Assembly (NCBI GenBank): GCA_054661495.1
Contig: BAAFSQ010000277.1
Location: 1 to 13,118 of the forward strand
Length of the DNA: 13,118 nt
Source: Zygophlyctis sp. KS116
Taxonomy: Eukaryota; Fungi; Chytridiomycota
Direction: 5' to 3'
Notes under the pieces: generated by a model
The model's input: only the letters and a program-made list of their open reading frames with translations
What the model was told of the DNA's origin: nothing
Database searches by the model: none
Shown here: positions 3,654 to 6,786 of the stretch, one piece after another
How the letters are laid out: the number at the start of each line of letters is the position of its first letter
Numbering within the stretch: the stretch's first letter is position 1
Position numbers and translations under genes: made by a program

Positions 3654-5440
3654 TTATTCAAGCTTGATGATCTTGACACAATTCTTTGCCTCTTTAATTC
3701 TTTCCCATCTTCCAAGACGATGCTCTTGGCCAATACCAGCAACTAAATATACGGTTTTTTTTCTTTCTGTATCATTGATTTCAGTAAATTGTAATGCATT
3801 AATAAATCCAATCATTGGAATTGATAAAAGTGGTGAAAAACTCTTTTTAGTAGGAGATAGTTTCCATAAACGAATTGAACCATCATTTGATCCAGATGCA
3901 AATAAGTCGGAATGAGGTATTGCTGCCAATGAACAAATCCAACTACTAATTTCAGAACCATGGGCTTTGAATTTAGTAAATATTGGCTTCTTTTTTGTAA
4001 CATTCCAAAGTGAAATGGCACTTTTATATAAATATAAATGGTATTTACCCTGCATCAGATCCAGAAATAAATAAATCCTCTTCAATCATACAAACTACAT
4101 CAATAGAACCACCAGACTCTACATGATTTTTCTCTGTTTTTTTTCTCATTCCATCCATAACAACTAAATCTTCAGTTGCATTCAAGACTCCTGCACCTCT
4201 AAAGACAAGTTGTGATTCCTCTGGAATTTTCCATAAACGGACTGTACGATCTCTAGTACCACAAGTAACACATCTTTCTTTACTTAGTGTTCCAATAGAT
4301 CCAATATGATCTTGATGTCCAAAACTTTGAAGTTTAATTGAAAAAAAATACAGTGTTTCAATGTATGACATTTCATCTACATCCCAGACTTTTATAGTTC
4401 TATCCATAGAAGCAGTATATAAATGATTAACACCTTTTCTAAATGCCAATGCTGAAACTGCATCACGATGATGCTTAAAAGTACCAAGCAATTGATTTGA
4501 TTCAATTGACCAGATATGAACTAGTTTATCTCTGCCACCAGTTGCCTAATACATTAGTTTATAAATTAAAAAAAGGAAAGTGTAGCAGCATCAAAATTCT
4601 AATAAAGTCATTCATCCGACTATATCAGACTCAAAGAGCGCTTTCATTCTTGAAGCTATGCCTACTGATATTCAAAAATTAATTTTTTGATATTCTGAGC
4701 AACTTCAATCTTGTCATAAAAACATACCAAATATTTTCCATCATGACTAGCACTCACAGCAAGCACCTGATCATTATGTCCTTTATGCTCCTTGAGTTTT
4801 TTTTCAGACATTCGTTTCAGTAACTTTTTTGTCGGCTTCAACCCCCTAGTCTTGACAAACAGCTTTTGTCCAGTTAGGAAATCCCATTTTATAATTGATG
4901 CATCTTTAGAAACTGAATACAAAAAATGTTTAGCGCCAATAGGACCTTGACTACTTATTGAAGCTATTGTAACCCCAGTTACAGTTAAATCATGACCTTT
5001 TAAAGTCATAATCTGTAGACTAGTTGGATCGACATTTGCAAACTTTACTGCAATCTGATGAAACAATTTACCGACAGATTCCAACTAAAATTAATAATAT
5101 TTTTACATACAGCATCATTTCTGATTCTTGAAGCGATCAAATCCTTGTCGAGATCTGCTGCATCGACTTCATCATTATCAACCTCTTCTTCTAACTCAGC
5201 CAAATACCTTTTAGCAAGTCGAAGTCTTTTCTGGGCTGGAGTTTCATTTTCAGACTCTGAACTCTCAGCGTCGGATACCCTAGCCTCGACATCTTCAATT
5301 TCCTCTGATAATGAATCTGATCTCTTCCGTCTAGAATTAATGAATGCTTTTGCAGCTTGAACCATCATTGCCCTCTTCTTTTTGGGAATATTAGCATCAG
5401 GATCTACAATGCTATGTTCATTAATGAAGAATTCATCCAT
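3654..5440 (-). CDS. RRP9: U3 snoRNP WD40 protein Rrp9/U3-55K, about 507 aa, 5 exons
   Basis: Exons 5440-5111, 5084-4728, 4545-4352, 4324-4049, 4020-3654. Introns 5085-5110 (26 nt), 4546-4727 (182 nt), 4325-4351 (27 nt), 4021-4048 (28 nt). Motifs: ETPAQKRLRLAKRYL, DGKYL|ATGGRD, ETL|FGHQD, RLWKIPEESQLVFRG, SLWNVTKKKP, GQEHRLGRW. Confidence 0.95.
4546..4727 (-). other. RRP9 intron 2 (182 nt), the only long intron in the window
   Basis: Donor GTATGT at 4727, branch-like ACTAAT near 4558-4553, acceptor TAG ending at 4546. Splicing joins DGKYL to ATGGRDKLVHIW. Confidence 0.92.
4578..4710 (-). ncRNA. Probable intronic box H/ACA snoRNA (about 133 nt)
   Basis: Hairpin 1 has lower stem TTGAAGTTGC/GCATAGCTTCAA, an internal pocket, and upper stem ATATCAAAAA/TTTTTGAATAT. 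The hinge is AGAATGA (imperfect H box). Hairpin 2 has AGC/GCT at the base and upper stem TTTGAGTC/GAC..TTAGA. ACA lies at 4583-4581, followed by 3 nt. The host is a ribosome-biogenesis gene. Confidence 0.72.
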
Positions 5441-5472: not shown

Positions 5473-6786
5473 TTACTGCAAAATTCCGTTTTTAAAATGT
5501 CTTGCATGTCTGGACATTCTTAATTTTTTCTTTTCCTTGTACCATCGTCTCTGATCTAAATACATTAATAGTTTTCCGTCATCAATAGATCCACGGATTT
5601 CAGAGTTTGAGTCATTTAATGAGCTAGGATCTGTTTTTTTACAGACTCTGCAAATAATAGACTCTATACTCCATTCCCACAACTTTGAAAAACTTGGCTT
5701 CCTATCATTAACCATTTTCTTCCAATTTAAACGAGAAATCCACTCTTGTTCTGAAATAGATTGTAGATATTGGACAAGTCTTTGAGGTGAGTCTGAAAAA
5801 TCCCGTGCATTCACTATTCCTTTATCATCTGGGAGATATGGTGTTAAATCAGTAGCTCCAATTACAACAGGCATACTATAATAGACTAGAGATTCGAAAA
5901 ACGATTCTGAAACATAAAACGGATCATTAAATGGTTCCACAACTAGAATATACTGATATGATCCGACAAGATTCATTTTATCAATGAAATCTGGTATTTT
6001 AATCCCTACTTTTGATTTGTATAATTCCAAACATCCTCCATATATATCAAGATTTACAATTTTAGATAATCTAATAATATAGTTTATGTGAGACGGAGGT
6101 AATAGACTGCATTCAGGCAAAAATGTAACCATAAACTTTCTAGTAGGAAAAGAAGGAAAGTTGGGATTCAATGCTAAACTTCTTGCTAATTCTCCAAATT
6201 CAAAGTAATCACGGAATGCTCTTGAAACAAGATTGTACGATATGTCTCCATGTCCGAGGCCAATAGAATAAGAATTAGTAGAGATTTTTGATTTGGGTAA
6301 AGTTTCCATCGGTATAGGATTTGATCCATCAAAACTAGATAGAGTATGTGCATATGTTGAGTTTGGGTGCGGTTGAATAACAAAATTAATTCTGTTTTTT
6401 GAATTGAAAGAGTCCCGATGAGAAGATATTGAAGCATATGCTTTTCTTGAGAGTTTATTATAGTTATTCTCTTCAAGCCAGACATGGTCAAATCCATTTT
6501 GTGTAAACGGGCGATCATGAAGTTTGTCTCTGGAAATGAATGCACATGGATTTGAACATCTTCTGGTCTTGAGTAATAATTGCCAAGGATGATTGAAAAT
6601 ATTTCCAAATTGAGAATCTAGACTTTCATCGACTTTAATGAGAATGAGTTTCGGACGTGATTCCGTTTTGATTGTTTCGGACAGACTTAACCAAACTAAA
6701 ATGCCAATCATACAAAGCATAAACGATAGCCTAGTGCAGCGGTACTTTGAATGCAAAAAAAATGCTTTTGGACTTTGAATTCTCAT
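5473..6786 (-). CDS. GT10 alpha-1,3/4-fucosyltransferase-like type II membrane protein (437 aa), with divergent donor-binding motifs
   Basis: N-terminal TM anchor LSFMLCMIGILVWLSL. LDIYGGC, YQYILVVEPFNDPFYVSESFFESL...PVVIG and IVNARDF..SPQRLVQYL align with the GT10 consensus YKFYLAFENS..DYITEK..NAL...VPVVLG and I...DF..P..LA.YL. Confidence 0.85.
   Translation of the reverse strand: MRIQSPKAFFLHSKYRCTRLSFMLCMIGILVWLSLSETIKTESRPKLILIKVDESLDSQFGNIFNHPWQLLLKTRRCSNPCAFISRDKLHDRPFTQNGFDHVWLEENNYNKLSRKAYASISSHRDSFNSKNRINFVIQPHPNSTYAHTLSSFDGSNPIPMETLPKSKISTNSYSIGLGHGDISYNLVSRAFRDYFEFGELARSLALNPNFPSFPTRKFMVTFLPECSLLPPSHINYIIRLSKIVNLDIYGGCLELYKSKVGIKIPDFIDKMNLVGSYQYILVVEPFNDPFYVSESFFESLVYYSMPVVIGATDLTPYLPDDKGIVNARDFSDSPQRLVQYLQSISEQEWISRLNWKKMVNDRKPSFSKLWEWSIESIICRVCKKTDPSSLNDSNSEIRGSIDDGKLLMYLDQRRWYKEKKKLRMSRHARHFKNGILQ

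Follow-up and report, generated by a model that had tools for sequence, protein, structure and literature searches.

We propose that intron 2 of RRP9 in this chytrid contains a two-hairpin box H/ACA snoRNA that would be co-transcribed with its host gene and whose 3' pocket would guide pseudouridylation of 18S rRNA at U1187 (yeast numbering); from comparison of homologous sequences we put the probability of this reading at about 0.88. In each of the 11 distinct copies, the UUGAGU and AAUU strands of the pocket form 10–13 bp around U1187, at a distance of 14–15 nt from the ACA box. The window, by which we mean the whole 13,118-nt stretch of DNA analysed, is contig C277, part of a 12.7 Mb assembly. 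An earlier, sequence-only reading of the window had proposed an H/ACA-type snoRNA of about 130 nt in this intron, ending 3 nt after ACA; conservation, covariation and the boxes all support such an RNA, the ends of which are predicted (Table 1).

Table 1. Features of the RRP9 locus and of the predicted snoRNA, in window coordinates.
Feature	Position	Strand	Basis or remarks
RRP9 host gene (U3-55K WD40 protein)	3654..5440	-	WD40 matches; homologues named ribosomal RNA-processing protein 9
RRP9 intron 2, 182 nt, snoRNA host	4546..4727	-	GT..AG in phase; GUAUGU...UAG; exactly 182 nt absent from an RNA contig
Predicted mature box H/ACA snoRNA, ~131 nt	4578..4708	-	Conservation and consensus fold; predicted ends, 5' end approximate
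Hairpin 1, small internal loop	4651..4708	-	Stem kept; loop sequence changed in distant copies; no conserved guide
H box AGAAUGA (ANANNGA variant)	4644..4650	-	A1 and A3 invariant, 11/11
Hairpin 2 lower stem, 5' strand AGCGCUC	4636..4642	-	Pairs with 4592-4584; two-sided changes in 4/7 pairs
5' guide UUGAGU	4629..4634	-	Unchanged in every copy; forms 6 Watson-Crick pairs with 18S ACUCAA (yeast 1189-1194)
Hairpin 2 upper stem-loop, closing CUG/UAG	4599..4628	-	Two-sided change in 7/11 pairs
3' guide AAUU	4595..4598	-	Invariant; pairs with 18S AAUU (yeast 1183-1186); begins 15 nt before ACA
Hairpin 2 lower stem, 3' strand	4584..4592	-	Alignment of homologues
ACA box and 3-nt tail	4578..4583	-	Among distinct copies, 9 have ACA and 1 has AUA, at 14-15 nt from guide; none there in Chytriomyces copy

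The host gene and its long intron

RRP9 was searched, and homologous loci were collected, exon by exon. The exon map gives five exons and introns of 26, 182, 27 and 28 nt, and the position of intron 2, after the GKYL codons, is the same in many chytrid RRP9 genes. Splicing of the long intron is seen in one freshwater metatranscriptome contig from which exactly 182 nt are missing, and a second RNA contig has a loose end that is compatible with the spliced form. The RNA matching the window comes from lake metatranscriptomes and consists of contigs only, none of which covers the snoRNA core. The earlier reading was thus right to single out intron 2 as the long one, and the range of 24–31 nt that it gave for the other introns becomes 23–31 nt among those placed here; a pair of small junctions around VPS16 are incompletely resolved and too tight for a long intron.

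Every other intron placed between window positions 2041 and 12176 is a GT-AG micro-intron within this size range, in a chytrid that is intron-rich. A 2026 paper (PMC13644364) names ciliates, microsporidia, dicyemids and myxozoans as the only groups with such micro-introns, and their occurrence in a chytrid may merit more interest than the snoRNA itself. RRP9 intron 3 (window 4351–4325), at 27 nt, is in frame and has no stop, so that ORF callers read through it. An intronless glycosyltransferase family 10 (fucosyltransferase) gene at 5473–6786 ends 33 nt before the RRP9 start and is syntenic in relatives. The order of genes differs in locus L132, where a CCCH/RING zinc-finger gene (1996–2838) that is missing at that place in the window stands between ERG28 and RRP9, the latter of which looks complete in that relative. 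The nearest named relatives of the neighbouring ERG28 protein are those of Entophlyctis helioformis, Batrachochytrium and other chytrids. Together with the lake origin of the matching RNA, this points to a chytrid of fresh water that probably stands close to the Rhizophydiales.

Conservation and fold of the RNA

The 3' hairpin is found, with strong compensatory changes, in the same intron of 10 other distinct RRP9 loci, including those of Chytriomyces and Gonapodya. In the close relatives (L007–L010, L018 and L132; 69–97% protein identity where measured) the introns are 178–182 nt long where complete, the core is conserved while the flanks are not, and the consensus fold is hairpin-hinge-hairpin-ACA. 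The distant loci (L134–L137, L139 of Chytriomyces confervae and L140 of Gonapodya prolifera) have an intron of 186–326 nt at the same codon with the same 3' hairpin core, and the homologues with a conserved core range from near-identical strains down to about 45–60% protein identity. In the alignment of 11 sequences, UUUGAGUCU and AGAAUU are invariant, as are the first and third A in the H box and the A's in the ACA box.

The alignment of orthologous RRP9 introns, which had been suggested as a check, shows covariation: across the 7-bp lower and 11-bp upper stems, 90.8% of cells are paired and 11 of the 18 pairs are changed on both sides. None of 500 shuffles reached the observed pairing and covariation, and registers slid along the alignment were only 28–57% paired. 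The third pair of the upper stem of hairpin 2 is G-C, G-U or A-U, depending on the copy. The 131-nt core folds with a z of −1.97 as a single sequence in the window and of −1.9 to −4.6 in five homologues; the whole of intron 2 folds no better than its shuffles (z −0.56). The two-hairpin fold exceeds chance. A model from which the Chytriomyces copy had been withheld recovers it at an E of 2e-6, and a DNA-pattern scan of metagenomes returned one true homologue (L018) together with 22 chance matches. The Chytriomyces copy itself (L139, 1555–1636) keeps both stems and the guide for Ψ1187, with H and ACA boxes absent at the canonical spacing; it may be degenerate or have variant boxes.

An ACA or AUA box lies 3' of hairpin 2 in 10 of the 11 distinct copies, AUA being the form in L010/L132. 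Most copies have G at position 6 of the H box; L018, L136 and L137 have A there, which gives the canonical ANANNA. Since ANANNGA is a recognised form of the H box (PMC1636440), the earlier caveat that this box is imperfect can be set aside, as can the one that the lower stem of hairpin 2 is short, for in the correct register it has 7 bp. The motifs themselves had been placed correctly (CGCUC at 4640–4636, AUUUU at 4597–4593 and AGAAUG at 4650–4645), and so had the 14-nt spacing from the 3' guide then proposed to ACA (4583–4581).

In a genome search the snoRNA locus is single-copy, and a gene for Cbf5/dyskerin is present. A second match of the model in the same genome (contig C378, E 0.13) was taken as chance, and a C/D-box reading was dropped for want of conserved C and D boxes. 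Hairpin 1 gave no match to known yeast rRNA Ψ sites or to the organism's own U2 and is probably a structural, non-guiding partner; a partial complement between its 3' strand and 25S rRNA, seen by eye, was dropped, that strand being stem. The genome has two full U2 snRNA genes (C11 and C140) and, on the small contig C912, a U2-like match whose two parts (8–68 and 1453–1550) are separated by about 1.4 kb.

The target of the 3' pocket

A search of the assembly for its own rDNA found none, and pairing was therefore scored on locus L047, where the 18S is 1800 nt long and has uridines at all 44 listed yeast Ψ positions; the list was partly checked against the literature. GC content was computed for all rDNA loci, none of which was taken to be human; closer reading was confined to loci of low GC and left out those rich in GC, such as L081. 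The viral contigs gave no 18S. The 18S loci were retrieved by a pattern that contains the U1187 site, so they are unusable as proof that the site is invariant. Pairing between pocket and target has a minimum of 8 bp (PMC6049503), and at U1187, as scored on yeast-numbered 18S, the two strands give more than that, with the target U 14–15 nt from the box, where 14–16 nt is expected. The fifth base of the 3' guide varies; in 8 of the 11 copies an A or a G stands there and adds one pair.

Within the window alone, two registers of hairpin 2 match known Ψ sites, namely U759 at 14 nt from ACA and U1187 at 15 nt, the latter closed by CUG/UAG. A free scan of 1450 uridines in 98 registers brought many sites to 8 bp, so that a pocket match made by eye arises easily. 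Of the top 14, which had 8 bp or more in each of the 11 copies, U1187 alone also leaves the upper stem closed in every copy. A rough nearest-neighbour sum of hairpin and duplex energies favours U1187 over U759, the difference being 10.6 kcal/mol for the window and 7–20 kcal/mol for the other copies.

By established H/ACA biology, the snoRNA would be trimmed from the debranched RRP9 intron to about 131 nt, with Cbf5, Nop10, Nhp2 and Gar1 binding at its H and ACA boxes. The pairings UUGAGU-ACUCAA and AAUU-AAUU in the 3' hairpin would leave U1187-G1188 unpaired, 15 nt from ACA, and Cbf5 would then isomerise U1187 to pseudouridine. This site, guided by snR36 in yeast and equivalent to human Ψ1244, is part of helix 31, over the A-site tRNA, and its loss in yeast raises −1 frameshifting 1.2-fold (PMC8307265, PMC2794176); the modification would thus sit above the decoding A site.

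Alternatively, one could envision a two-state 3' pocket in the window's clade, in which the stems switch, UUUGA pairing with UYAGA, and one hairpin guides both Ψ1187 and Ψ759. AGCGCUC, invariant in 7 of the 11 copies, is complementary to the GAGUGUU that follows U759 and has the 14-nt spacing; the alternative helix is possible in every one of the 11 copies, and two sites are served by one hairpin in yeast snR3 (PMC5824354). The genome also gives no match to snR80, although this blank is weak evidence because Rfam misses the RRP9-intron snoRNA as well. To serve U759, however, the lower stem must melt, which is worse by 7–20 kcal/mol; keeping 3 bp of it leaves only 7 bp with the target in L009, L010, L134 and L135, below the minimum; and the alternative helix has no two-sided change. 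We consider a dual pocket improbable; if true, it would combine, in a compact genome, what snR36 does with half of the work of snR80. The helix UUUGA/UYAGA (alignment columns 16–20 and 52–56) would also close the empty pocket, and two of its U's are invariant although they have no role in the pairing for Ψ1187.

It is less probable still that the H/ACA RNA has another target (18S U1186, U912 or an snRNA), or that the structure acts in cis, for example as an Rrp9 autoregulatory element, and is not a released RNA. With the register left free, U1186 and U912 score as high as U1187, and pockets are somewhat flexible; these registers nevertheless break the closing CUR/YAG stem in every one of the 11 copies, U912 falls 16–17 nt from ACA, and neither uridine is a listed yeast Ψ site. 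Intronic autoregulatory structures are known in fungi, but conserved H and ACA boxes at canonical spacing, with perfect complementarity to a known Ψ site, would be unexpected in one. Least probable of all is the target originally named, 18S Ψ759 alone under an snR80-like guide: that register is the top match in the window's own sequence (5 + 7 bp at 14 nt), but its pocket boundaries differ from those of the conserved fold, its 5' guide consists of lower-stem bases that covary with the 3' strand as stem, constrained folding of the window's group leaves no lower stem, only 3 bp of the 3' guide are left in 8 of the 11 copies, hairpin 1 does not match 25S U776 (the second snR80 site), and the most distant homologues (L136, L137, L139 and L140), in which CGCUC is replaced and the match to U759 thereby destroyed (1–2 + 3 bp) while the UUGAGU/AAUU core is invariant, largely refute it.

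Relation to known guides and significance

Judged by its sequence and that of its homologues, the RRP9-intron RNA has every H/ACA feature that could be tested and would function like snR36/SNORA36, although the guiding of Ψ1187/Ψ1244 that marks those RNAs is read here only from complementarity and conservation. No snoRNA family was matched when the window, the core and nine homologous loci were scanned with Rfam, a check the sequence-only reading had recommended, and neither the snR36 (RF01242) nor the SNORA36 (RF00340) model scored above cut-off on this snoRNA; we therefore file it as a functional equivalent and not as a family member. Common descent with snR36 is plausible. Yeast snR36 is likewise a box H/ACA RNA that targets 18S Ψ1187, its one known target, and guides through its 3' hairpin, as the chytrid RNA is predicted to do; its model, however, has 180 positions as against about 131 nt, and it is a free-standing gene whereas the chytrid RNA is intronic. 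Vertebrate SNORA36/ACA36 resembles the chytrid RNA in its rRNA site (human Ψ1244, chicken 18S-1202), its length of about 132 nt and its place in an intron of a ribosome-biogenesis gene, and differs in using the 5' pocket for this site, in having DKC1 as host and in the additional listing of Ψ105. Yeast snR80 (RF01269), whose model gave no match, shares the H/ACA class and has U759 as one of its sites, but neither of its targets (18S 759 and 25S 776) has a conserved guide in the chytrid RNA.

The intron outside the snoRNA amounts to only 19 nt on the 5' side and 32 nt on the 3' side, flanks already near micro-intron size. The earlier suggestion that the snoRNA is why this intron escaped shrinkage is therefore plausible: the intron would have stayed long since the RNA cannot shrink, which fits the arithmetic of 19 + 131 + 32 nt and the precedents of snR191 in NOG2 and snR59 in RPL7. 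In those cases (snR191/NOG2 and snR39/snR59/RPL7; PMC8476143) a snoRNA has likewise been kept across deep fungal lineages, in an intron whose position is conserved and whose host gene serves ribosome biogenesis, although host, RNA and target are others and the matter there is retention of the intron rather than its length in a micro-intron genome.

Our literature search, of incomplete coverage, found no paper that links chytrids, snoRNA, intron and RRP9 or that names RRP9 as a host. The catalogue of H/ACA RNAs in early-branching fungi is still thin, 7 of 50 families having been traced to them (PMC5824354). As both the mechanism and the target site are already known, the finding is a gain in annotation and not a surprise: it would supply a chytrid guide, supported by covariation, for a pseudouridine of the decoding centre, together with a link to a host intron in RRP9 that extends from Rhizophydiales-like chytrids as far as Gonapodya. 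In a genome whose introns measure 23–31 nt, length alone flags snoRNA genes, which would permit a cheap listing of the snoRNA set.
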